A stretch of 64,000 bases of DNA from Hyalangium minutum (GTDB taxonomy: Bacteria > Myxococcota > Myxococcia > Myxococcales > Myxococcaceae): positions 124,001 through 188,000 of the forward strand of contig NZ_JMCB01000013.1 of assembly GCF_000737315.1 (NCBI RefSeq), in the 5' to 3' direction. How positions within the stretch are numbered: position 1 is the first letter of the stretch; each line of letters starts with the position of its first letter. This document shows, one piece after another, positions 41,093-54,832 of this stretch. A model generated the notes under the pieces. That model had not been told where the DNA came from. It was given only the letters and a program-made list of their open reading frames with translations, and did not search any database. Made by a program: the position numbers and the translations under genes.

Positions 41093-43168
41093 ATGGGGAC
41101 CTTCGACTATTACACGACGCTGGTTCGACTCGCTCCGGCAGCCGTCGCGAAGAGCGCGGTACGCCGGGTGCAGGGGGTTGCGAGGCAGGCTCTCTATCGC
41201 CGCCGGTACCGGGTGGATGAGCTGCGGATCCTCCAGGCGTATGGGGCCGAGTCCGCGGCGGAGCTCGCGGGCAAGCTCCTGGAGACGCGCCACTCCAGCG
41301 TGTGGTGTGAGCACCGTCAGCGCCGGTCTGTGCTCGAGGCGCTCGCGGCCGTGCCGGGTGCCCGGGAGCGGGCGCTGGAGCGGGCCGAGGCGGCGCTCCG
41401 CCAGGAGTTCCGTGTCTTCGGCACGCGCGTGGCCTTCGGTGAGGGCCGGTCGGTGGAGTGGTCCCTGGATCCGGTGAGCGGCTACCGCTACCCGCTGGAG
41501 CCCGTGGAGCAGCTCCAGTTGGTGCGGCCCGGGACGGATCCCAAGTACCCGTGGGTGCTCGGGCGGCTCGACAGCCTCGTGGCGCTGGGGCAGGGCTACT
41601 GGGTGGAGGAGAGCGAGCAGGCACGTTCCCGCTACGCGCGCGCCTTCGTGCTGCAGACGCTGGATTTTCTGCAGGCCAACCCTCCTGGGCAGGGTGTGCA
41701 GTGGGCGTGCACCATGGAGGTGTCGCTGCGGGCGGCCAACATCGCGCAGGCGCTCGCCATGTTCGCGGAGGCGCCCGAGGTTCAGCGGCCCGAGTTCCTC
41801 GTGCCCGTGCTGAGCTCGCTCGCCGAGCACACCGCGTGGGTGGAAGCGCATCCGGAGGACCAGGGCGCGGTCCCCAACAATCACCTCATCGCCAACTACG
41901 TGGGCCTGCTGGTGGTGGGCCTGCTGTTCCCGGAGCTCCCGGGCGCGTCGAACCAGGTGGCGCTGGCGGTGAAGACGCTGCGCACGCAGGTGCTGGCGCA
42001 GGTGCACGAGGATGGCACCTCCTTTGAGGGCTCCACCTCCTATCACCGGCTCGTGGTGGAGTTGTGCACCCTGGCGCACGTGGTGGCGCTCCGGGCCGGC
42101 GTGATGCTGGGCAAGGACTTCGAGGAGCGCCTCCTCAAGATGTTCCGCGCCACGCGCGCTTGGTGCTCCGAGCAAGGGCGGGTGGCTCAGATCGGCGACA
42201 ACGATTCCTGCCGCGTCTTCCCGCTCCGGGAGCGCGACGATCAGGACCACGGCTATCTGGCTCCGCTGGGCGCGGCGCTCTTCGGCGACGCCTCGCTGGC
42301 GGGCGGCGAGTTCCCGGACGAGGCGGCGTGGCTGCTGGGCAAGCCGGGCCTGGAGCGCTTCCAGGCGCTGGGGACGGCTCCAGCGCCCTCCTCGGTGTGC
42401 TTCCACTCGGGGGGCTTCCACGTGCTGCGTGGAGCGGGGGCTGTCGTCACCATCAGCGCGGGCCGTCAGGGGCAGCGCGGGGTGGGCGGGCACAGCCACA
42501 ACGACAAGCTCTCCTTCGAGCTGCACCTGGGCGGAGAGCCCGTGATCGTGGATCCGGGGACAGGCACGTACACGCGGGACGCGATGGTCCGGAACTTCTT
42601 TCGCGGCACCTCGGCGCACAACACGCTGGTGGTGGACGCGGTGGAGCAGGCTCCCTTGGAGCCCGAGCGTCTCTTCGCGCTGCCCGAGGACGCCCGGGCC
42701 CGGGTGGAGGTGTTCCAGCCGGGCGCGCAGCTGGATCGGCTCACCGTGCGGCACGACGGGTACCGGACGCTGCCGTCGCCCGTGGGCATCGAGCGGACCT
42801 TCTACCTGGACAAGCGGGAGCGTGCGCTCGCGGTGACGGATCGGCTCGTCGGTACGGGGGCGCACGAGGTGGTGGGCCGGCTGTACCTGCCGGACGAGCA
42901 CGTGCGGCTGCGTCCCGCCTCGACCTGGGAGATTGCGCGGGCCTTGCGTGTGCCGGATGCGCCGCGGGCCTTCGAGCCGCTGTGCGTGGAGTTGGGGCCA
43001 GAGGACGCGCCGAGGGCGTGTGTGCTCTTCGCCTCGGGACTGACGCCCCGGTTGGACGGGGCCCTGTACTCGCCGGGCTACGGGCGGGTGAGGCCGGCGT
43101 CGGTGGTGACTTACGGGGCACGTCGCGTGCCTCCGGCATGGCTGCGGTGGGTGGTCGTCTTTTCGTGA
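41093..43168 (+). CDS. Heparinase II/III family (alginate lyase-like N-domain) protein
   Basis: PNNHLIAN, FEGSTSYH, IGDND, GGHSHNDKLSF, VDPGTGTY and AHNTLVVD motifs. Confidence 0.85.
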   Translation: MGTFDYYTTLVRLAPAAVAKSAVRRVQGVARQALYRRRYRVDELRILQAYGAESAAELAGKLLETRHSSVWCEHRQRRSVLEALAAVPGARERALERAEAALRQEFRVFGTRVAFGEGRSVEWSLDPVSGYRYPLEPVEQLQLVRPGTDPKYPWVLGRLDSLVALGQGYWVEESEQARSRYARAFVLQTLDFLQANPPGQGVQWACTMEVSLRAANIAQALAMFAEAPEVQRPEFLVPVLSSLAEHTAWVEAHPEDQGAVPNNHLIANYVGLLVVGLLFPELPGASNQVALAVKTLRTQVLAQVHEDGTSFEGSTSYHRLVVELCTLAHVVALRAGVMLGKDFEERLLKMFRATRAWCSEQGRVAQIGDNDSCRVFPLRERDDQDHGYLAPLGAALFGDASLAGGEFPDEAAWLLGKPGLERFQALGTAPAPSSVCFHSGGFHVLRGAGAVVTISAGRQGQRGVGGHSHNDKLSFELHLGGEPVIVDPGTGTYTRDAMVRNFFRGTSAHNTLVVDAVEQAPLEPERLFALPEDARARVEVFQPGAQLDRLTVRHDGYRTLPSPVGIERTFYLDKRERALAVTDRLVGTGAHEVVGRLYLPDEHVRLRPASTWEIARALRVPDAPRAFEPLCVELGPEDAPRACVLFASGLTPRLDGALYSPGYGRVRPASVVTYGARRVPPAWLRWVVVFS

Positions 43169-43221
43169 ACGGTGTTGTTGAGGCGCCGTGTCCCGCGGCG
43201 CCTTGCTTGGAGGGAGTACAG

Positions 43222-44547
43222 ATGCGCGTCATGGTCAGCCCGCTCGTGGATATGATCCGCAAGCGGGAAGCTAAAGTGGGGGTTGTCGGTCTGGGCTACG
43301 TGGGGCTTCCGCTCGGCATGGCGTTCGCCGATGCGGGGTTCCCGGTGATGGGGCTCGATATCGACAAGCGCAAGATTGACAAGATCGCCAAGGGGGAGAG
43401 CTACATCAAGCACATCCCCAGCGAGCCGCTGAAGAAGCTGAGCAGCGAGGGCAAGCTCAAGGCGACGACGGACTTCGCCAAGGCCAAGGAGATGGACTGC
43501 ATCGTCATCTGCGTGCCCACGCCGCTGACGGCGTCGCGTGAGCCGGACATGACGTACATCGTCCAGACGGGCGAGGCGCTGTCCCCGTACGTGCGCCGTA
43601 ACCAGCTCTTCGTGCTGGAGTCCACCACCTACCCGGGCACCACCGAGGAGGTGCTCAAGCCGCTGCTGGAGAAGAGCGGCCTGAAGGCGGGCGTGGACTT
43701 CCACCTGGCCTTCAGCCCCGAGCGCGAGGATCCGGGCAACAAGAGCTTCAACACGAAGACGATCCCGAAGATCGTCGGCGGCTTCACGCCGGCGTGCCTC
43801 GAGGTGGCGCAGGCCCTGTACTCCAGCGCGCTGAAGGAGACGGTGCCGGTGTCCTCCACGCGCGTGGCGGAGCTCTCCAAGCTGCTGGAGAACATCTTCC
43901 GCTGCGTGAACATCGCCATGGTCAACGAGATGAAGATGCTCTGCGACCGCATGAACATCGACGTGTGGGAGGTCATCCAGGCGGCGAGCACCAAGCCGTT
44001 CGGCTTCATGCCCTTCTTCCCGGGCCCGGGCCTGGGCGGTCACTGCATCCCGATCGATCCGTTCTACCTGACGTGGAAGGCGCGCGAGTACGAGTTCCAC
44101 ACCAAGTTCATCGAGCTGGCCGGCGAGGTGAACACGCAGATGCCGTACTACGTGGTGCAGCGCACCATGGAGGCGCTCAACCAGCACAAGAAGACGCTCA
44201 ATGGCGCCAAGGTGCTGTGCTTGGGTGCGGCGTACAAGAAGGACATCGACGACATGCGCGAGAGCCCGAGCCTCCGCGTCATCTCGTTGCTCAAGGAGAA
44301 GGGTGCCGTGGTCAGCTACCACGACCCGTACGTGCCGAAGCTGGAGAAGGGCCACGGCTTCAACTTCGAGATGACCTCCGTGCCGCTGTCGCCGGAGACG
44401 CTCGGCCAGTACGACGCGGTGGTGATCCTCACGGACCACTCCAACATCGACTACTCCATGGTGGTGAAGAAGTCCCAGTGCGTCGTCGACACGCGCAACG
44501 CCACGAAGCACGTGGGACCGGGCCGTGAGAAGGTGACGAAGGCCTAG
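43222..44547 (+). CDS. Nucleotide-sugar (UDP-HexNAc) 6-dehydrogenase, WbpA/WecC-like
   Basis: VVGLGYVG, ICVPTP, ESTTYPGTT, SPERED, GPGLGGHCIPIDP and AYKKDIDDMRESP motifs. Confidence 0.93.
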   Translation: MRVMVSPLVDMIRKREAKVGVVGLGYVGLPLGMAFADAGFPVMGLDIDKRKIDKIAKGESYIKHIPSEPLKKLSSEGKLKATTDFAKAKEMDCIVICVPTPLTASREPDMTYIVQTGEALSPYVRRNQLFVLESTTYPGTTEEVLKPLLEKSGLKAGVDFHLAFSPEREDPGNKSFNTKTIPKIVGGFTPACLEVAQALYSSALKETVPVSSTRVAELSKLLENIFRCVNIAMVNEMKMLCDRMNIDVWEVIQAASTKPFGFMPFFPGPGLGGHCIPIDPFYLTWKAREYEFHTKFIELAGEVNTQMPYYVVQRTMEALNQHKKTLNGAKVLCLGAAYKKDIDDMRESPSLRVISLLKEKGAVVSYHDPYVPKLEKGHGFNFEMTSVPLSPETLGQYDAVVILTDHSNIDYSMVVKKSQCVVDTRNATKHVGPGREKVTKA

Positions 44548-44651
44548 TTGCACGGGGGCTGATTGCCTCCCAAGCGAGGGTCCTCGCCGCTCTGGAGCAG
44601 GGCGGTGAGGACCTTCGGTGCATTGCGGGGTGGTTTCGGTACAGTGGGGCC

Positions 44652-48298: not shown

Positions 48299-49387
48299 AT
48301 GGCCCTTCACGGCGACCTCTTCAGTTATCCGCTTCCTGAACTTCTGCAGTGGCTCGACGGCTCTCGCAAGACGGGGACGTTGCAGCTGTCCTGGGAGGCC
48401 GGGGAGCGCAAGATCTTCGTTCTCTCCGGCCAGGTGGTCGCCACCGCCAGCCGGGGGCTGCGTGAGCGCGTGGCCCGGCTCCTGGAGCTGGCCAAGCTGA
48501 GCTCGGGCAGCCGAGTGCTGGCCTCCTTCGAGGAGCTGCAGCGCACCCCGGATGTCGAGCAGGCCTTTGCCACTCACGGCGTGGACGTGCGCATGGTCCG
48601 GGAGATGGGGCGCGAGGAGCTCTTCAGCTCGATGATGGACCTGACCATCGCCGGGCGCGGCACGTTCCACTGGACGGAGGATGCGGACCGCACGGGCGAA
48701 GACTGGGTGCCCTCGGACATGAGCATCCGCGAGATGCTCTTCGAGTCCCTGCGCTGGGTGGACGAGCACGGGGATGTGGAGCAGGCGCTGCCCATCGACG
48801 CGATGAGCGTGCGGGCGGTGGCTCCGCCGAGCGCGAGCCAGCCGCTGTTGCACCGGGTGATCCTCACGCTGTGCGCCAACTCGCAGAACCTGGGGCGGCT
48901 GAGGCTGTCGATGGGGATGTCGCGATCGGCGGTGACGCGGCGGGTGTTCGATCTGCTGCGCTTGAAGCTGGTGGAGGTGGAGGGAGCGCCGCAGGTCGAG
49001 GCGGATCCGGTGGCGGAGATGCTGGAGAAGGGGCAGGTGTTGGTGCGTGAGGGACAGTACGACTCGGCGGGCATCATCTGCGCCTCGTTGCTGGCCAGTG
49101 ATCCGGCGGATCGGCGCGTGCGCGAGTTCGCCCGCATGGTCCAGCGCGAGCACGTGGCGGCCCTCTATGGGGAGCTGCCTCCGGTGGCGGTGCCGGTGCC
49201 GGTGCACGATCCGGAGGGCATGGCGCTGCTCAAGCCCGAGGAGCGTCAGATCGCCGGCCTGGTCAACGGCGGCTGGGATGTGTCGACCTTGGTGCTAGCC
49301 GTACCCGCGCGGGAGCTGGACACCCTGCGCACGTTGGCGAAGCTGGTGCGCATGGGCCTGGTGCAGCTCACCATGCCGATGCGCTGA
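48299..49387 (+). CDS. DUF4388 (PATAN-like) domain protein with a TPR-like helix pair
   Basis: L.GDL....LPELLQWL..SRKTGTLQL...KIF..SGQVV...G.F.W pattern. Confidence 0.85.
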   Translation: MALHGDLFSYPLPELLQWLDGSRKTGTLQLSWEAGERKIFVLSGQVVATASRGLRERVARLLELAKLSSGSRVLASFEELQRTPDVEQAFATHGVDVRMVREMGREELFSSMMDLTIAGRGTFHWTEDADRTGEDWVPSDMSIREMLFESLRWVDEHGDVEQALPIDAMSVRAVAPPSASQPLLHRVILTLCANSQNLGRLRLSMGMSRSAVTRRVFDLLRLKLVEVEGAPQVEADPVAEMLEKGQVLVREGQYDSAGIICASLLASDPADRRVREFARMVQREHVAALYGELPPVAVPVPVHDPEGMALLKPEERQIAGLVNGGWDVSTLVLAVPARELDTLRTLAKLVRMGLVQLTMPMR

Positions 49388-49434
49388 TCCAGGGCCTGTG
49401 ATGGAGGGAAGAGCGCGGCCCCAGCGCTGGCGGG

Positions 49435-49989
49435 CTATTGCAGGTGTGGAGCGCCCCCATCGGCTGAGGAGAGGCCCCCATCTGGACTGACAGTGGGGAC
49501 TCCCCCGTCTGCCTGTTCCGCCGGGCTCCTGGGCTTCCCTGCGTCCGGGACGCTGGGGCCCCAGGGAGCCTCAGGTTCAGTTCCGATGACCCGACGGAGA
49601 ATGCGGCCGTTGGTGCTGATGGCGTACTTCGCGCCCGTGTCCACGGAGATGTACTGCGGACCGCAGAAGTCAGGGTCCTCCATGATGCGGACAAAGATGA
49701 TGTCGTCCTGACGGATGATTCGATAGCGATATGCCTCCGGCCTCATCCAGCAGGGCCGGTTCTCGTTGTCCGAGGGGAGAAAGTCATGGACAGCGATGCT
49801 GAGGGCTCGGAGGAGCGTGCCATCCAGCTCGTACGGCTTCTGTCCGGCACCGACCGCCACCGCTGAGTCCGCGAAGAACGGTGGGAACGCAATGGACGGA
49901 TCGTTCTCCTGCGGGAGCTGGCGCGAGCCCGGGGACCGCGCACATCCCACGAGGATCAGGGCCGCAAGCCACAGGGACACGTTGGTCAT
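49435..49989 (-). CDS. Hypothetical lipoprotein
   Basis: MTNVSLWLAALILVG-C lipobox; two Cys (RPCW, DFCG); lower GC than core genes. Confidence 0.75.
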   Translation of the reverse strand: MTNVSLWLAALILVGCARSPGSRQLPQENDPSIAFPPFFADSAVAVGAGQKPYELDGTLLRALSIAVHDFLPSDNENRPCWMRPEAYRYRIIRQDDIIFVRIMEDPDFCGPQYISVDTGAKYAISTNGRILRRVIGTEPEAPWGPSVPDAGKPRSPAEQADGGVPTVSPDGGLSSADGGAPHLQ

Positions 49990-50032
49990 CCGCATGGGGC
50001 CCTCTCGACGCACGTTCCGCCGCAGCAGGTGA

Positions 50033-50773
50033 TTACTTCGCAGGAGCAAATTGGAAATCCGTCTCACTGGTCCAGTGGACGGTGCCGACGGGGGTCTTGT
50101 GCCACTGGCCTTGTGCATCCGGTGTCCATTTCAGCACCTCGGTGCTTCCGTGGCTGTACTCATAGAAGCCGTCGCACGAGAACGGTTCCGGTGGGTGAGC
50201 GTTCGAGATGAAGGCGACGATGCTGACAGGGACGACGCCTTGCTCCGTTTGAACAGAGCCGCCATGAATCCGGGCGATCTTCGCCACGGCAGCGATGTCT
50301 TCCTCCGAGATGTTGGTGGGCGTGGCGGGATGGTTGTGAAGGAAGTACAGGTATTGGAGGCTGCGAGGGGGATATCGCGGGTCCTCCACGAAGGCCGGGG
50401 CTCTGCAGCCCTTTTCGCCGTTGGCGCGAAGCGGCTCCGTGCTCTCCACGAGGTAGCTCAGCTCGTATTGGTGGGTTGGCGTGTAGTAGAGCCAGGCGCA
50501 GTACTCGTTTGATACGCGCCACCGCACAGGGAAACTCGTGTCATCCGAGCGCCCAGCCGTTGCGTTGCGCTGACCCAGGATGAGTGGGCAGGCCGCCAGC
50601 AGCGCATCCCAAGAGGTGGGGAACGGTCCCTGGCCTGGAAATGGGCCGGCTACGCTGGAAGGGATCTTCCCGGACTCAAAGCGCACAACGCCTGGAGGTG
50701 GCGGAGTGGGAACGCATCCCCAGGCCGCAAGAAGCCCCAGCAGGTAGGCCCAGAGTGGTCTCCCCACATGCAT
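50033..50773 (-). CDS. Lipoprotein with a JAB/MPN+ (JAMM) metallo-isopeptidase-like motif
   Basis: LLAAWG-C lipobox; NEYCAWL ... HNHPATPTNISEED = E..HxHx7SxxD; start could be 50788. Confidence 0.7.
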   Translation of the reverse strand: MHVGRPLWAYLLGLLAAWGCVPTPPPPGVVRFESGKIPSSVAGPFPGQGPFPTSWDALLAACPLILGQRNATAGRSDDTSFPVRWRVSNEYCAWLYYTPTHQYELSYLVESTEPLRANGEKGCRAPAFVEDPRYPPRSLQYLYFLHNHPATPTNISEEDIAAVAKIARIHGGSVQTEQGVVPVSIVAFISNAHPPEPFSCDGFYEYSHGSTEVLKWTPDAQGQWHKTPVGTVHWTSETDFQFAPAK

Positions 50774-50804
50774 GGTCCTCTCCTGCACTGATTGTAGGTG
50801 GACC

Positions 50805-51998
50805 TTACGCCGTCTCGGGGAGGCCCGCGGCGTTCAGCCGGGTGAAGACCTGCATCACGAGGTACAGCGCGAAGGCGGCGTCATCCACCCGCGCCGTGTC
50901 CACGTGGTTGGACAGCCCCTGCAGCCGCAGCAGGTCCGAGCCATCCACCCGCAGCAGGAAGCCCTGCTGTGCCAACGAGCCCTCTCCCGCCAACGCCAGG
51001 GCTCGCCGGACCGCGTCCACGCACGCTTTCACGCACTGGGCATACTGTCCGCTGGCGAATGCGGTCTCCGCCGCACGGGCGTGGTCGAACAGCTCTCCCG
51101 GCGCCAGCGCCGTCGCAGGCCCCATCGCCCGTTGGCCCGCCGTGCGAGGGACGGGCACCGCCGAGGAGTTCGGAGTCACCTCCATCCGAGCCGCAGGAGC
51201 CATGGCTGCCGCCACGATGGGCGCGGGCCCACCCGCCGAGGCCACCGCAGGCAGTGTCGTCGAGGAGGGCGGGTGCTGCCGGGGCGTCATCGCCGGAGGT
51301 TGCACTGCCTGCATCGTCTGGGACGGCCGCGTCGGCAGGTGCTGGCTCAGCTGCGCCTCCAGCCCTGCTCCCGGAGCCACAGGGCTCGGGGTCGGGCGGG
51401 GCGGGGGAACGATGCGCTTGGCCCGGAGATCCTTGATGACCAGCCGGGTGATGGCTTTGAGCGAGTCCAGCACCCCCTGGCCGCTCGTGGCCGAGGTCTC
51501 GAACTCAGGCGCGCCGCGCGCGTTCAGCGCCGCTCGCATCTGCTCCACGGGCATTGCCTTGTCGATGTCCCGCTTGTTCCACTGCATCACCAGCGGGAAC
51601 CGATCCAGCCGGATGCCCTGCTCGAGCAGGTTCTCCTCCAGGTTTTGCAGCGACTCGCGGTTGGAGTCCAACGCCTCCGGCTGCGAGTCCGCCACGAACA
51701 CCACCCCGTCCGCCCCCTGCAGCACCAGCTTGCGCGTGGCGTTGTAGAAGACCTGGCCCGGCACCGTGTACAGCGCCAGCCGCACGGAGCAGTCATTCAC
51801 CCGCTCCACCTTCACCGGCAGGAAGTCGAAGAAGAGGGTGCGGTCGCCCTCCGTGGCGATGGACATCATCTCGCCTCGGTGCGCCGGCCGGACCGTCTCG
51901 TAGATCTTCCGCAAGGTCGTCGTCTTGCCCGACAACCCCGGTCCGTAGAAAACGATCTTCGCGGCCACTTCGCGGGCCAACAGGTTCACGCTGCTCAC
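50805..51998 (-). CDS. MglA-like small GTPase with a Pro-rich linker and C-terminal helical domain
   Basis: G1 GPGLSGKTT, DRTLFFDF, TVPGQ, VFVADS and NKRD; about 200 extra C-terminal residues. Confidence 0.92.
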   Translation of the reverse strand: MSSVNLLAREVAAKIVFYGPGLSGKTTTLRKIYETVRPAHRGEMMSIATEGDRTLFFDFLPVKVERVNDCSVRLALYTVPGQVFYNATRKLVLQGADGVVFVADSQPEALDSNRESLQNLEENLLEQGIRLDRFPLVMQWNKRDIDKAMPVEQMRAALNARGAPEFETSATSGQGVLDSLKAITRLVIKDLRAKRIVPPPRPTPSPVAPGAGLEAQLSQHLPTRPSQTMQAVQPPAMTPRQHPPSSTTLPAVASAGGPAPIVAAAMAPAARMEVTPNSSAVPVPRTAGQRAMGPATALAPGELFDHARAAETAFASGQYAQCVKACVDAVRRALALAGEGSLAQQGFLLRVDGSDLLRLQGLSNHVDTARVDDAAFALYLVMQVFTRLNAAGLPETA

Positions 51999-53252: not shown

Positions 53253-53888
53253 CTACCGGTTGCAGGCCTGATCCATGCCGCCCTCGCAGGCCTTCTGGAA
53301 CAGCTCGACGGCGCGCTTCGGATCCGCCGTCACGCCACGGCCTTTCTCGTAGAAGAGGCCGAGGTTGAAGCAGGCACCGGCCTCACCTGTCGCGCAGGAT
53401 TGCTCGAAGATCTTGGCGGCGCGGCTGTCGTCCTGCGTCACACCCCGGCCCTGGGCATACAAGGCGCCGAGGTTGGTGCAGCCCCGGCTCGCACCCAAAG
53501 TGCAGGCCTTGTCGAAGAGCAGGGCGGCGTGGCCGTCGTCGCGCGTCACGCCGCTGCCCTGCACATAGAGGATGCCCAGGTTGGTGCAGCCGCGGGCGTC
53601 ATCGCCATCGCAGGCCTTCTCGAAGAGCGGGGCGGCGCGGCTGTCATCCTTCTCCACGCCCACGCCCTCCCAGTAGCTGACGCCCAGTTGGTAGCAGCCC
53701 TCCTTGTCGCCGGCCGCGCAGGCCTTCTCGCGATCAACAAAGGTCGGCTGGGCGGGCGTGACGGCGGTGGCGTCGTGCACTGCGGAGGGAGCGGCGGCGG
53801 CGGGCTTGCTCGTGGCGCAGCCTCCAAGTCCCACTGCGAGCGCGCAGATTCCGAGCATGAGGGCTGAAGCGTAGGGCGACGGTGACAT
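53253..53888 (-). CDS. Sel1-like (Hcp-type) repeat lipoprotein
   Basis: Lipobox LGG-C; four 36-aa repeats (AC..G...GC.NLG..Y..G.GV..D...A...F) plus a cap. Confidence 0.9.
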   Translation of the reverse strand: MSPSPYASALMLGICALAVGLGGCATSKPAAAAPSAVHDATAVTPAQPTFVDREKACAAGDKEGCYQLGVSYWEGVGVEKDDSRAAPLFEKACDGDDARGCTNLGILYVQGSGVTRDDGHAALLFDKACTLGASRGCTNLGALYAQGRGVTQDDSRAAKIFEQSCATGEAGACFNLGLFYEKGRGVTADPKRAVELFQKACEGGMDQACNR

Positions 53889-53905
53889 GACTGCCTCCTG
53901 GGGGC

Positions 53906-54832
53906 TCACGGCGTGCGTCGGGGTTTGGACTTCTGCTGCTCGAGGGTTCGCAGGGAGTCGCGCTGGAGCCGTGCTTGCGCCTCTTCCCGGCCCAACCCGG
54001 TGAAGTGCATCGCGAGCGCCGTCTTCACAGAGCCGCCCGCGGTGCTCAGCAGCCGTCGCGCCCGTGCGAGGGGCAGCTCCGTCAGCTCCGCCACCATGCG
54101 CACGGCACGCGCTTGGAGCTTCGCGTTGGCCGGGCGCACGTCCACCATCCGCCCGCGGTACACCTTGCCCAGCGAGACGAAGGCCGCCGTGGTGAGCGCA
54201 TTGAGGATCAACTTGGTGGCGGTGCCCGCCTTGAGCCGCGTGGAGCCCGCCACCAGCTCCGGGCCCGTCACCGCCAGGATCAGGATGTCTACCTGGAGCC
54301 GAGGCCCAGGAGGGTTACAGCACACGAGCACCGTCCGCGCTCCCCGTCGCCGCGCCTCGGCCAGCGCCCCGAGCACATAGGGCGTGGATGCACTGGCGGA
54401 GATGCCGCACACCACGTCCTTGGGGCCCGCGCGGAACCGGCGCACGGACTGAGCGCCTGCGGCCGGATCATCCTCGGCGCCTTCCACGGCGCGAGTCAGC
54501 GCCCGGTGGCCTCCGGCGATAACGGCCTGGACCTGGGAGGGAGGAGAACCAAACGTCGGCGGGCACTCACTGGCGTCGAGCACGCCGAGTCGCCCGCTGG
54601 TGCCAGCGCCCACGTAGAGCAGCCGGCCCCCGGCCCGCAACGCATCCGCTACGGCCCGCGCTGCTTCCGCTACGGACGGGAGCGCGCTGCGGACCGCTCG
54701 GACGGCAGCCAGGTCTTCCTGATGCATCCGGCGGACGAGGGCCTCGACAGAGAGGAGGTCCAGCTCGTCCGCGCGGGGATGAAGCCGCTCAGTGGGCGGG
54801 AGCGCGAGCGGAGTCGAACGCGGCCTTCCCAC
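53906..54832 (-). CDS. murQ: N-acetylmuramic acid 6-phosphate etherase
   Basis: GAGTSGRLGVLDASECPPTF, EGAED, GPELVAGSTRLKAGTATK and GRMVDV motifs. Confidence 0.96.
   Translation of the reverse strand: MGRPRSTPLALPPTERLHPRADELDLLSVEALVRRMHQEDLAAVRAVRSALPSVAEAARAVADALRAGGRLLYVGAGTSGRLGVLDASECPPTFGSPPSQVQAVIAGGHRALTRAVEGAEDDPAAGAQSVRRFRAGPKDVVCGISASASTPYVLGALAEARRRGARTVLVCCNPPGPRLQVDILILAVTGPELVAGSTRLKAGTATKLILNALTTAAFVSLGKVYRGRMVDVRPANAKLQARAVRMVAELTELPLARARRLLSTAGGSVKTALAMHFTGLGREEAQARLQRDSLRTLEQQKSKPRRTP

Follow-up and report, generated by a model that had tools for sequence, protein, structure and literature searches.

JAB/JAMM proteins are known so far in two guises, cytoplasmic isopeptidases that serve ubiquitin-like systems and polymorphic-toxin tips, the latter from prediction only. 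Those JAB domains of prokaryotes that had been recognised by 2012 were, outside the toxin clades, intracellular (PMC3482391). In one of these clades, the predicted JAB-fold toxin Tox-JAB-1 is strictly associated with Imm65, an alpha+beta immunity protein carrying a signal peptide and a lipobox (PMC3482391); since Imm65 is a lipoprotein, the only one among the immunity proteins of that collection (Zhang et al., 2012, PMC3482391), the Tox-JAB-1 enzyme is implied to act outside the cytoplasm. A second clade, Tox-JAB-2 (DUF4329), has the immunity protein Imm-NTF2-2, which adopts an NTF2 fold, and its delivery is by RHS, T6SS or T7SS (PMC3482391). Myxobacteria possess lipoprotein toxins of another type, the SitA proteins, in which an N-terminal escort domain of ∼375 aa is joined to a polymorphic C-terminal nuclease that needs to enter the cytoplasm; the SitI immunity proteins are not transferred, and outer-membrane lipoproteins serve as cargo in exchange (PMC5562445, PMC8546572).

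We analysed a two-gene cassette in a 64,000-nt stretch of Hyalangium minutum DNA (hereafter the window), for which the Tox-JAB-1/Imm65 pair, itself a computational prediction, is by analogy the closest precedent. A sequence-only reading of the window had singled out two co-oriented lipoprotein genes of low GC content at 49435-50788, the first bearing an E..HxHx7SxxD motif, between a DUF4388 gene and an MglA-like GTPase gene. The two ORFs, their common minus-strand orientation, both lipoboxes, the flanking genes and the exact coordinates of the motif were borne out, and the features are as follows.

48299-49387, plus strand: DUF4388 gene, flanking the cassette
49388..50804, no strand assigned: accessory 1.4-kb insert, the whole interval from the DUF4388 stop to the GTPase stop, containing the two-gene cassette
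49435..49995, minus strand: gene 2, predicted partner lipoprotein, 186-aa ORF
49438..49575, minus strand: disordered Pro/Gly/Asp tail of gene 2, with the D[AG]G motifs PDAG, ADGG, PDGG and ADGG-APHLQ
49576..49908, minus strand: globular core of gene 2 (aa 30-140), one helix and four strands, with two invariant Cys and GAKYAIS.DGRILRR
49942..49995, minus strand: predicted signal peptide and lipobox of gene 2, MRMTNVSLWLAALILVG followed by Cys (...LILVG/C; Cys codon 49942-49944)
50033..50773, minus strand: gene 1, encoding a JAB/JAMM-like lipoprotein of 246 aa if translated from the ATG at 50773
50297..50338, minus strand: HNHPATPTNISEED, the HxHx7SxxD metal-site motif of gene 1 (aa 151-164: H151, H153, S161 and D164), from sequence and alignment
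50504..50506, minus strand: catalytic-type Glu of gene 1 (E95, counted along the 251-aa ORF), part of the invariant E-Y-C motif within NEYCAWL
50714..50773, minus strand: predicted signal peptide and lipobox of gene 1, MHVGRPLWAYLLGLLAAWG followed by Cys (...LLAAWG/C; Cys codon 50714-50716)
50805-51998, minus strand: MglA-like GTPase gene, flanking the cassette

Mechanical ORF calling gave a gene 1 of 251 aa (50033..50788, minus strand) that starts at a GTG at 50788. The start is likely to be the ATG at 50773 instead, as the closest homologs, P0001 and P0002, are likewise 246 aa long; an RBS-like GGAGAGG lies upstream of this ATG. Gene 1 is followed after 37 nt by the first, and after 43 nt by the second, ATG of gene 2, so that the 43-nt gap reported earlier holds for the second start codon and not for the first. 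The GC content is 62.4% in gene 1 and 64.9% in gene 2, against a window mean of 68.1% and 68.6-72% in the neighbours (GC3: 73-78% in the cassette genes versus 83-90%), which places the 1354-bp cassette region at the 0.3 percentile among all equal-sized windows.

The pair is absent from a close relative (L138), where the GTPase/DUF4388 junction measures 7 nt and the DUF4388, AnmK and GTPase proteins are 96%, 93% and 90% identical to those of the window. Stigmatella erecta (L136) and M. xanthus (L137) likewise lack the pair and have the GTPase abutting DUF4388. Of the other loci, 79 of 80 carry the cassette in contexts other than murQ-anmK-GTPase. The murQ-anmK context, with which a shared transcript had been suggested, is incidental because in L138 the GTPase and DUF4388 genes meet in the same way with no pair between them; given that relatives both close and distant have nothing at this junction and that the remaining copies lie elsewhere, a functional tie to murQ-anmK-GTPase was ruled out. 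Inspection by eye of the insert ends revealed neither direct repeats nor a target-site duplication, tblastn searches against plasmids and phages returned no match to the cassette, and we found no promoter-like site at the cassette and no terminator-like site on its coding strand. Nor was there a T6SS, Rhs, CDI, plasmid or phage link, or a trafficking or delivery domain. The cassette is accessory and self-contained.

Residues E95, H151, H153 and D164 are invariant among 51 gene 1 homologs (37-96% identity) and S161 is conserved in at least 90% of them; the JAMM residues are retained in a distant lipoprotein subfamily as well. Such conservation across homologs and the distant subfamily argues that the motif did not arise by chance. 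Many homologs have a spacing of x6 rather than x7 between HxH and S. The main family carries HNH, whereas HSH and HTH (within HSHPHN and HTHPHN) are confined to the distant subfamily, a likeness to the Tox-JAB-2 clade with its E, H[ST]H, S and D. The AlphaFold model of gene 1 (pLDDT 92.5, pTM 0.86) has the HxH closing strand 145-152 and the SxxD opening helix 162-175. An HxH at the end of a strand and an SxxD at the start of a helix is the layout of JAMM enzymes. Foldseek matches of the model were almost exclusively JAB/MPN structures, and we take the top 50 PDB matches to be all of this type (Prp8 Jab1, BRCC36, Rpn11, AMSH, EMC8). The best E-value against the PDB was 6e-4 with low TM-scores (0.23-0.29); against BFVD, the best match had a TMt of 0.52 and the list included a 'JAB domain-containing protein'. 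Based on this model, an MPN-like fold can be assigned to gene 1 with moderate, not strong, confidence.

Profile scans took in both proteins, 51 and 60 of their family members, consensus sequences and distant relatives. Curated family membership was ruled out for both, as Pfam, NCBIfam, PADLOC and PHROGs yielded no match to gene 2 and, for gene 1, only sub-threshold JAB matches. Specifically, aa 94-176 of gene 1 matched positions 18-98 of the Prok-JAB Pfam profile below threshold (E = 0.022; 15.1 bits versus a cut-off of 25), with E95 near the start of the match, and a RadC match was likewise sub-threshold (E = 0.15). These weak matches, and that to a CBASS JAB model, are in the correct register. 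Weak Prok-JAB matches occurred in 12 of 51 family members, none of them above threshold, and the family consensus had no match in the JAB HMM scan. The HMM of DUF4329, a family named earlier for comparison, did not match gene 1 at E up to 5, and the Tox-JAB-1 and Imm65 Pfam models did not match members of either family at E up to 1. Profile searches against PDB sequences returned nothing relevant.

The gene 1 family comprises 133 homologs, nearly all from Myxococcaceae and Archangiaceae, with no M. xanthus record among the matches listed. The mature protein of ∼225 aa is conserved end to end, lacks a variable tip and includes an additional conserved N-terminal segment of ∼60 aa. Every full-length homolog listed stands alone, at ∼200-340 aa; the sole longer match (1541 aa) is weak and partial. 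Gene 1 thereby differs from Tox-JAB-1, which forms the C-terminal tip of Bacteroidetes RHS proteins, whereas gene 1 is a stand-alone 246-aa lipoprotein without an RHS neighbour. The two also differ in the context of the Glu, which is NxxxE in Tox-JAB-1 and S-N-E-Y-C in gene 1, and in distribution, the Tox-JAB-1/Imm65 pair being from Bacteroidetes and the gene 1 family almost only from Myxococcaceae/Archangiaceae. Similarly, gene 1 has neither the escort domain nor the polymorphic tip of SitA.

Both proteins are predicted to be exported. Lipoprotein calls, made with a regular expression and a hydrophobicity check, identified a lipobox in ∼65 of 82 gene 1 copies and in 78 of 81 gene 2 copies; in the window, that of gene 1 is atypical (A-W-G-C) and that of gene 2 canonical (L-V-G-C). 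Lys at position +2, the inner-membrane retention signal of M. xanthus (PMC3222651), was found in none of the 65 gene 1 lipoboxes and none of the 78 gene 2 lipoboxes, while Arg or Lys occupies +3 in 55% of the gene 2 lipoboxes. As neither protein carries the +2 Lys signal, both are probably outer-membrane lipoproteins. The invariant Cys residues of the two proteins would form disulfides. Gene 1 shares E...HxHx7SxxD, its secondary-structure placement and an MPN-like fold with Rpn11, AMSH, BRCC36, Prok-JAB, RadC and CBASS Cap3. However, Rpn11, AMSH, BRCC36 and the prokaryotic JAB proteins are cytoplasmic or nuclear, whereas the gene 1 family is predicted to be exported and lipid-anchored and has four invariant Cys. 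Accordingly, the earlier description of gene 1 as a lipid-anchored JAB protein is supported by the intact motif, the lipobox and the MPN-like fold that Foldseek recovered from the AlphaFold model.

Gene 2 lies next downstream on the same strand in 81 of 82 gene 1 copies, drawn from 31 genome records, and the sole unpaired copy (L049) is a truncated gene 1; this pairing, with the lipobox in most gene 2 copies, supports the proposal that gene 2 is a lipoprotein partner. The pairing is also kept at the single distant-subfamily locus examined (L113). Genomes carry one to six diverged copies of the cassette, its spread is patchy, and presence or absence differs among close relatives. In contrast to gene 1, gene 2 also stands alone, as an orphan at L082/L083, L084, L085, L104, L114 and L125. 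Orphan gene 2 is conserved across Corallococcus species and is found also in Vitiosangium and in metagenomic contigs. At L092 and L113, an intact gene 2 adjoins a gene 1 that has shrunk to a remnant or bears an internal deletion, and premature stops interrupt gene 1 next to an intact gene 2 at L010, L023, L052 (copy 2) and L062; these premature stops could be sequencing errors. Decayed gene 1 copies outnumber decayed gene 2 copies by six to at most one, a difference that is not significant alone (rough length-weighted binomial, p ∼0.1). The cassette is therefore an obligate unit from the side of gene 1 and not from the side of gene 2, and the orphans and the broken gene 1 copies beside intact gene 2 argue that gene 2 is valuable alone. 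Judged by pairwise dN/dS (∼0.13 for gene 1, ∼0.16 for gene 2), both genes are functional and under ordinary purifying selection, with no arms-race signal. Clustering of flanking ORFs at 80 loci did not uncover a third conserved component; the groups obtained reflected synteny at individual loci, apart from one generic family resembling sensor kinases.

The sequence-only reading had expected gene 2 homologs to follow variable upstream domains. This did not hold, as they follow one JAB family or stand alone. A polymorphic-toxin architecture was ruled out, since gene 1 has no variable tip and variable toxin domains were not seen upstream of gene 2.

The exported gene 1 family, as predicted, combines lipid anchoring and an intact catalytic set with a dedicated lipoprotein partner, which points to JAMM chemistry on an envelope substrate. 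Our best explanation, to which we give somewhat less than an even chance, is that the cassette encodes an envelope-acting JAMM metallopeptidase effector and its cognate lipoprotein immunity or inhibitor protein. Gene 1 would be an exported, lipid-anchored, JAMM-type zinc metallopeptidase that cuts a peptide or isopeptide bond in an envelope component. Gene 2, in the same compartment, would bind gene 1 one-to-one and block it in the producer, and orphan gene 2 copies may guard against gene 1 proteins from neighbouring cells. In the window, the cassette would be expressed via read-through from the anmK-GTPase operon. The comparative data are of the generic kind seen in such systems, with the putative toxin gene almost always paired and with orphan immunity genes and toxin decay. 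The earlier toxin/immunity idea is thus sustained by the 81/82 pairing, the orphans and the decayed gene 1 copies.

Envelope hydrolases encoded beside a periplasmic or outer-membrane immunity protein are established, as in the T6SS amidase Tse1/Tsi1, the muramidase Tse3/Tsi3 and Bd3459/Bd3460, by which predatory Bdellovibrio protects itself. The cassette resembles them in that a candidate envelope hydrolase adjoins a partner of the same predicted compartment. For effectors of the Tse1, Tse3 and Bd3459 type, both the delivery machines and the peptidoglycan substrates are known. With Tox-JAB-1/Imm65 the cassette shares the strict association with a lipoprotein immunity gene, gene 2 being downstream of gene 1 in nearly all copies, but as homology between gene 2 and Imm65 was not detected, this likeness is one of analogy only. 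Imm-NTF2-2, by comparison, is not described as a lipoprotein (PMC3482391), whereas gene 2 is predicted to be one. The Sit systems offer a third likeness, that of myxobacterial lipoprotein toxins in several families, accessory and always in an operon with an immunity gene.

Several observations stand against the effector/immunity reading. The TM-scores are low, the E-values are modest and all JAB HMM matches are sub-threshold; both a delivery domain and a T6SS, Rhs, CDI, plasmid or phage link are missing; and selection is purifying rather than of the arms-race type. Moreover, the absence of solitary gene 1 would follow just as well from a need for gene 2 as chaperone or subunit. Delivery by outer-membrane exchange, as in SitA/SitI, is weakened because both proteins, lacking +2 Lys, would be outer-membrane cargo: SitI stays untransferred, whereas gene 2 is a predicted outer-membrane lipoprotein, and the two proteins would be exchanged together, undercutting kin discrimination by this route. 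The family is almost confined to myxobacteria that are social and predatory and that pass outer-membrane lipoproteins from cell to cell, which makes it a tractable candidate, either for a new effector/immunity family acting in the periplasm or for a self-protected lytic enzyme, and the stand-alone two-gene format would allow a first experimental test of the cleavage target of a 'toxin-type' JAB.

The strongest competitor, which we regard as unlikely, is a role in envelope housekeeping: gene 1 would be a peptidase of the periplasm with a part in trimming or recycling some envelope polymer (for example, peptidoglycan stem peptides or a protein-peptidoglycan tether) and gene 2 a regulatory or targeting lipoprotein, with paralogs differing in substrate or timing and no intercellular antagonism. 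Lipoprotein regulators of cell-wall enzymes are established and provide the precedent. Such a role would fit the predicted envelope location of both proteins, the purifying selection on both genes, the lack of delivery machinery or mobile-element genes near the cassette and the location of the pair, which in the window comes last, on the 3′ side, in the murQ-anmK run and whose strand bears no terminator-like site. However, that neighbourhood is incidental, given the empty site in L138, Stigmatella erecta and M. xanthus and the location of 79 of 80 other loci elsewhere. The patchy spread at one to six copies per genome, with no M. xanthus among the matches listed, likewise speaks against housekeeping, and it is hard to see why a regulator of its own enzyme, as gene 2 would be, should occur as an orphan or stay intact beside a decayed gene 1.

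It is improbable, to a greater degree, that the two proteins simply form an obligate two-subunit complex or chaperone pair, in which gene 2 serves the folding, Lol transport or activity of gene 1 without inhibiting it. The two families have diverged in step (Mantel r = 0.62, p = 0.001), the genes are closely spaced or translationally coupled (at L025 they overlap by 4 nt), the predicted compartment is common to both, and gene 1 is never found without gene 2, all as a complex would have it. Yet gene 2 persists as an orphan in Corallococcus species, Vitiosangium and metagenomic contigs, and is retained intact at loci where gene 1 is broken.

Equally improbable in our estimate is an enzyme paired with its substrate or pseudo-substrate, whereby the Gly-Gly C-terminal tail of gene 2 sits in the JAMM cleft of gene 1, either to be cleaved at D-G-G so that gene 2 is matured or released in the style of a ubiquitin-like precursor, or to act as a product-mimicking plug. 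In the AlphaFold model of gene 2, the core (pLDDT 87-97) is followed by a tail of pLDDT ∼55. D[AGS]G motifs are ∼10-fold more frequent in the gene 2 family than expected from composition, and in ∼85% of 127 homologs the last one is followed by 0-8 residues, with 27 homologs ending exactly at the motif. Among the window ORFs of at least 100 aa, only gene 2 has two or more PD[AG]G. The strict pairing of the genes would also suit a tail ligand, and JAMM enzymes cut after the C-terminal Gly-Gly of ubiquitin-like proteins (PMC3482391). On the other hand, the helix and four strands of the gene 2 core do not make a beta-grasp, the motif recurs two to five times per tail in the manner of a low-complexity linker, and the distant-subfamily partner at a single locus (L113) lacks the tail but keeps the pairing. 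If true, D-G-G processing of gene 2 by gene 1 would represent 'GG-tail' maturation of the ubiquitin-like type outside the bacterial cytoplasm, and a product-mimic plug would be a new immunity route for silencing a JAMM enzyme; either would take JAMM/GG-tail chemistry into the bacterial envelope.

The core of gene 2 had no significant structural or sequence match. The best Foldseek E-value was 0.3, and we take the weak, non-significant fold matches to be mostly NTF2-like alpha+beta proteins; the resemblance to NTF2 (compare Imm-NTF2-2) or PepSY is a lead only, without statistical support.

Least probable by far is a non-catalytic JAB-like scaffold that keeps the motif but serves as a binding module like Prp8 or an Rpn8-type MPN: the inactive Prp8 Jab1/MPN domain did provide the best PDB Foldseek matches and every JAB HMM match was sub-threshold, but inactive MPN domains have lost their metal ligands, whereas the E, H, H and D residues show no variation, and S is at least 90% conserved, in the family and the distant subfamily under purifying selection.

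Neither Pfam nor NCBIfam has a model for the gene 1 family, and the copy in the window is deposited with an annotation that leaves out the signal peptide, so that the family is invisible to routine annotation.

The pair is a real feature for which the databases hold no model: a stand-alone exported JAB lipoprotein (gene 1) with an obligate lipoprotein partner (gene 2), accessory and present in several copies per genome in Cystobacterineae. Both minus-strand ORFs are present as the sequence-only reading had described them, and the JAMM spacing it had claimed, E...HxHx7SxxD, is exact.

Features of the pair (window coordinates; gene 1 residues numbered on the 251-aa ORF)
50033..50788, minus strand, gene 1 ORF, 251 aa counted from GTG
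50504-50506, minus strand, gene 1 Glu95 within NEYCAWL
50297-50338, minus strand, gene 1 metal-site motif HNHPATPTNISEED, aa 151-164
49435..49995, minus strand, gene 2 ORF, 186 aa

Gene 1 is likely to start at the ATG at 50773, with GGAGAGG just before it, giving a protein of 246 aa, the length also found in its closest homologs, P0001 (96% identical) and P0002. The deposited annotation (P0285, 164 aa) takes an internal GTG, codon V88 of the ORF, as its start and so loses the lipoprotein signal peptide along with 82 conserved residues. The 43-nt intergenic gap reported earlier holds from the second ATG of gene 2, but is 37 nt from the first. The lower GC content of the pair was borne out (gene 1, 62.4%; gene 2, 64.9%; window mean, 68.1%): GC3 is 73-78% versus 83-90% in seven neighbouring genes, and among all equal-sized windows of the 64 kb the 1354-bp interval ranks at the 0.3 percentile. 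The only other stretch in the window equally low in GC (63.4%), at ~43150-44550 on the plus strand, encodes a nucleotide-sugar dehydrogenase-like product just past a heparinase II/III-like ORF (41093-43168) and could belong to a polysaccharide locus.

Gene 1 lies outside every curated family, and we place it in the JAB superfamily by motif and predicted fold because agreement with sequence profiles is weak. Its detectable homologs number 133; when 1.84 billion representative proteins were searched by profile, 96 matched in all, which indicates a small, narrow family. Across 51 aligned members (37-96% identity), E95, H151, H153 and D164 are invariant, as are C67, C97, C128 and C205, and S161 is conserved in at least 90%. 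A distant subfamily, which includes Myxococcus stipitatus MYSTI_07652 and a Corallococcus llansteffanensis protein, keeps E-Y-C, HxHP, SxxD and all four Cys, and also bears lipoboxes. In the confident AlphaFold model (pLDDT 92.5, pTM 0.86), HxH ends a strand and SxxD begins the following helix, which is the JAMM layout. Foldseek upheld the proposed JAB/MPN kinship in the identity of the PDB matches but not in their strength: the best 50 are almost all JAB/MPN structures, which we take to be Prp8 Jab1/MPN, BRCC36, Rpn11 homologs, AMSH/STAMBP and EMC8, but the best E value is a modest 6e-4 and TM scores are low (0.23-0.29). Against viral models the best TMt was 0.52, and the fourth match was a 'JAB domain-containing protein'. 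Sequence profiles lend the assignment weak support, with E = 0.022 for Prok-JAB (15 bits, below the cut-off of 25) and E = 0.15 for RadC; sub-threshold Prok-JAB matches occur in 12/51 family members, CBASS JAB models align at the motif only, and a PDB sequence search gave no match.

For gene 2, 60 homologs were detected, in the taxa that also carry gene 1, and searches of Pfam, NCBIfam and PDB gave no match. AlphaFold models its core (aa 30-140, pLDDT 87-97; motif GAKYAIS.DGRILRR) as one helix against four strands. Foldseek gave no significant match to this model; the weak ones are mostly what we take to be NTF2-like or PepSY/BLIP-like alpha+beta proteins. The final ~45 residues form a disordered tail, rich in Pro, Gly and Asp, in which D[AGS]G motifs are ~10-fold above the expectation from composition. 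The first such motif stands at a constant offset past GRILRR, the last lies at most 8 residues (0-8) from the C-terminus in ~85% of 127 homologs, and DGG or DAG is the exact C-terminus in 27. Within the window, no ORF of at least 100 aa besides gene 2 carries two or more PD[AG]G.

That both proteins are lipoproteins was supported by their own lipoboxes (MHVGRPLWAYLLGLLAAWG ahead of the Cys in gene 1, MRMTNVSLWLAALILVG in gene 2) and by those of most homologous copies, where a lipobox follows a hydrophobic stretch in ~65/82 gene 1 and 78/81 gene 2 copies. In M. xanthus, Lys at +2 is reported to keep lipoproteins in the inner membrane (PMC3222651); none of these ~65 and 78 lipobox-bearing copies has Lys there, and both proteins are therefore predicted to sit in the outer membrane. 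The even numbers of invariant Cys, four in gene 1 and two in gene 2, would fit disulfide-bonded periplasmic proteins. At +3 after the lipobox Cys, Arg/Lys is found in 55% of gene 2 homologs (C-x-R) and never in gene 1 homologs, whose pattern is C-[SA]-[SPA]-P.

Scanning reference genomes gave 108 loci. The 80 retained are spread over 31 genome records, each with 1-6 copies, and among the genera represented are Corallococcus, Archangium, Hyalangium, Cystobacter, Vitiosangium, Myxococcus and Citreicoccus. The partnership suspected from the window was substantiated by adjacency and by correlated divergence of the two families (Mantel r = 0.62, p = 0.001): a gene 2 homolog lies next to gene 1 on the same strand in 81/82 copies, at 20-110 nt or with a 4-nt overlap, and in the sole unpaired copy (L049) gene 1 is truncated. 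The single distant-subfamily locus available (L113) is paired too, with a tail-less gene 2 homolog. No recurrent third gene was seen around the cassette. Pairing is obligate from the gene 1 side only. Orphan gene 2 copies are seen in Corallococcus carmarthensis and one further assembly (L082/L083), where an unrelated lipoprotein and a TonB-dependent receptor lie upstream, as well as in a Myxococcaceae MAG (L084) and Vitiosangium (L085). In a gene 2-seeded metagenome scan, 31 copies were paired, 11 were not judgeable and seven were called orphan; three of the seven are clean (L104, L114, L125), and of the other four calls two stem from a single frameshifted locus (L129), one from a fragment (L133) and one from the second copy of a tandem (L120). 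Elsewhere gene 1 has decayed beside an intact gene 2: it is reduced to its final 56 codons in L092, its catalytic core is internally deleted in L113, and it has premature stops in L010, L023, L052 copy 2 and L062. Gene 2 is frameshifted in L016 only, where gene 1 is altered as well, and this may be an assembly error.

Vitiosangium sp. GDMCC 1.1324 carries two complete cassettes in tandem at L052 (4977-8244) and at L061 (1082-7281), one gene 1 copy of the L052 tandem having a stop; at the metagenomic L120, gene 1 is followed by two gene 2 copies. The only non-myxobacterial attributions, a Nitrospiraceae MAG (L074, 1.6-kb contig) and a Thioalkalivibrio MAG (P0279, 1.9-kb contig), probably reflect mis-binning, given such short contigs, and not genuine hosts.

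The cassette is accessory, and its GTPase/murQ-anmK surroundings are incidental. The adjoining GTPase is conserved across Myxococcaceae/Archangiaceae (87% identity to that of Hyalangium gracile, which points to a Hyalangium-like source for the window), and the pair is not universally conserved beside it.

Junction between the DUF4388 and GTPase genes in relatives
L138, close metagenomic relative (DUF4388 96%, AnmK 93%, GTPase 90% identical): the two stops 7 nt apart, pair absent without trace
L136, Stigmatella erecta: empty
L137, M. xanthus: empty
L134 and L135, Hyalangium gracile and H. versicolor: kinase/nSTAND gene in place of the pair
L033, Archangium MAG: pair present, 44% and 52% identical; flanks 65-78%

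Judging by homolog records, several closer relatives also have the pair adjoining the GTPase; the remaining copies lie in unrelated contexts. With the junction lacking the pair in L134-L138, empty in three of these, and other copies elsewhere, the proposal that the murQ-anmK-GTPase run is its functional context falls. Read-through from anmK-GTPase into the cassette is nonetheless plausible, since the coding strand shows no terminator-like site. No match was found in plasmids or phages, and no target-site duplication was seen at the cassette ends. Pairwise dN/dS (~0.13 for gene 1, ~0.16 for gene 2) indicates that both genes are functional, and gives no overall arms-race signal for either. One Archangium cassette group lies ~3.4 kb downstream of mglB-mglA (L025, L027, L032, L037, L039, L049, L063), flanked by two large TPR/coiled-coil genes; in L025 the two genes overlap by 4 nt (ATGA).

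We tentatively read the pair, with slightly less than even confidence, as an effector/immunity or enzyme/inhibitor cassette. Gene 1 would be a putative JAMM metallopeptidase acting in the cell envelope, and gene 2 a cognate lipoprotein of the same compartment that would keep it in check. This reading draws on an exported protein with an intact, invariant catalytic set, on gene 1 never standing without gene 2 while gene 2 is found orphaned or beside a decayed gene 1, on several diverged copies per genome, and on presence or absence differing among close relatives. Delivery by outer-membrane exchange is possible, as the cassette-bearing taxa are those where such exchange is known, but that both proteins would be cargo weakens the case. 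It is unlikely that gene 1 is a housekeeping envelope enzyme and gene 2 its regulatory lipoprotein, given the patchy distribution and the orphan gene 2 copies; the orphans likewise make an obligate complex or chaperone pair improbable. JAMM enzymes recognise C-terminal Gly-Gly, which would suit a substrate or pseudo-substrate role for the D-G-G tail, but the gene 2 core is no beta-grasp, the motif occurs more than once and the partner in the distant subfamily is tail-less, and we give this relation similarly little credence. The invariant metal ligands make a non-catalytic scaffold very improbable.

The nearest precedent to this proposed effector/immunity or enzyme/inhibitor cassette is Tox-JAB-1/Imm65, with which it shares the logic of a JAB toxin and lipoprotein immunity. 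Tox-JAB-1 is a predicted toxin tip on RHS proteins of Bacteroidetes, and Imm65 was the sole lipoprotein immunity protein of that survey, before which all prokaryotic JAB domains identified were intracellular (PMC3482391). Unlike that system, the present family lacks an HMM match, the NxxxE motif and an RHS carrier, and belongs to a different phylum. Tox-JAB-2 (DUF4329) has its H[ST]H motif in common with the distant subfamily only, and its HMM gave no match in the gene 1 family. SitA/SitI share host group and lipoprotein nature with the cassette, but differ in their escort domain and nuclease architecture; SitI immunity proteins are not transferred (PMC8546572), whereas the gene 2 product would itself be exchange cargo. 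The literature searched held no experimental work on toxin-type JAB domains: lipoprotein immunity to a JAB toxin was known by prediction alone, and the cassette would be a fresh variant of such a pairing.

The neighbouring MglA-like GTPase (50805-51998, minus strand) has an Arf/Ras-type domain (aa 1-190) followed by a ~200-aa Pro/Ala-rich C-terminal extension. The gene, whose conservation spans M. xanthus and Archangium, overlaps anmK by 4 nt in the window. Except in Hyalangium gracile and H. versicolor, it faces a convergent DUF4388/PatA_N gene in most of the genomes checked. The murQ-anmK slot, filled in the window by a Sel1-repeat lipoprotein gene (53253-53909, minus strand), varies among L134-L138: Hyalangium gracile and H. 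versicolor have a DUF2314 gene on the opposite strand, Stigmatella erecta a 358-aa protein without assigned function, and in L138 the slot is empty. It is a second small variable site of the same operon-like run.
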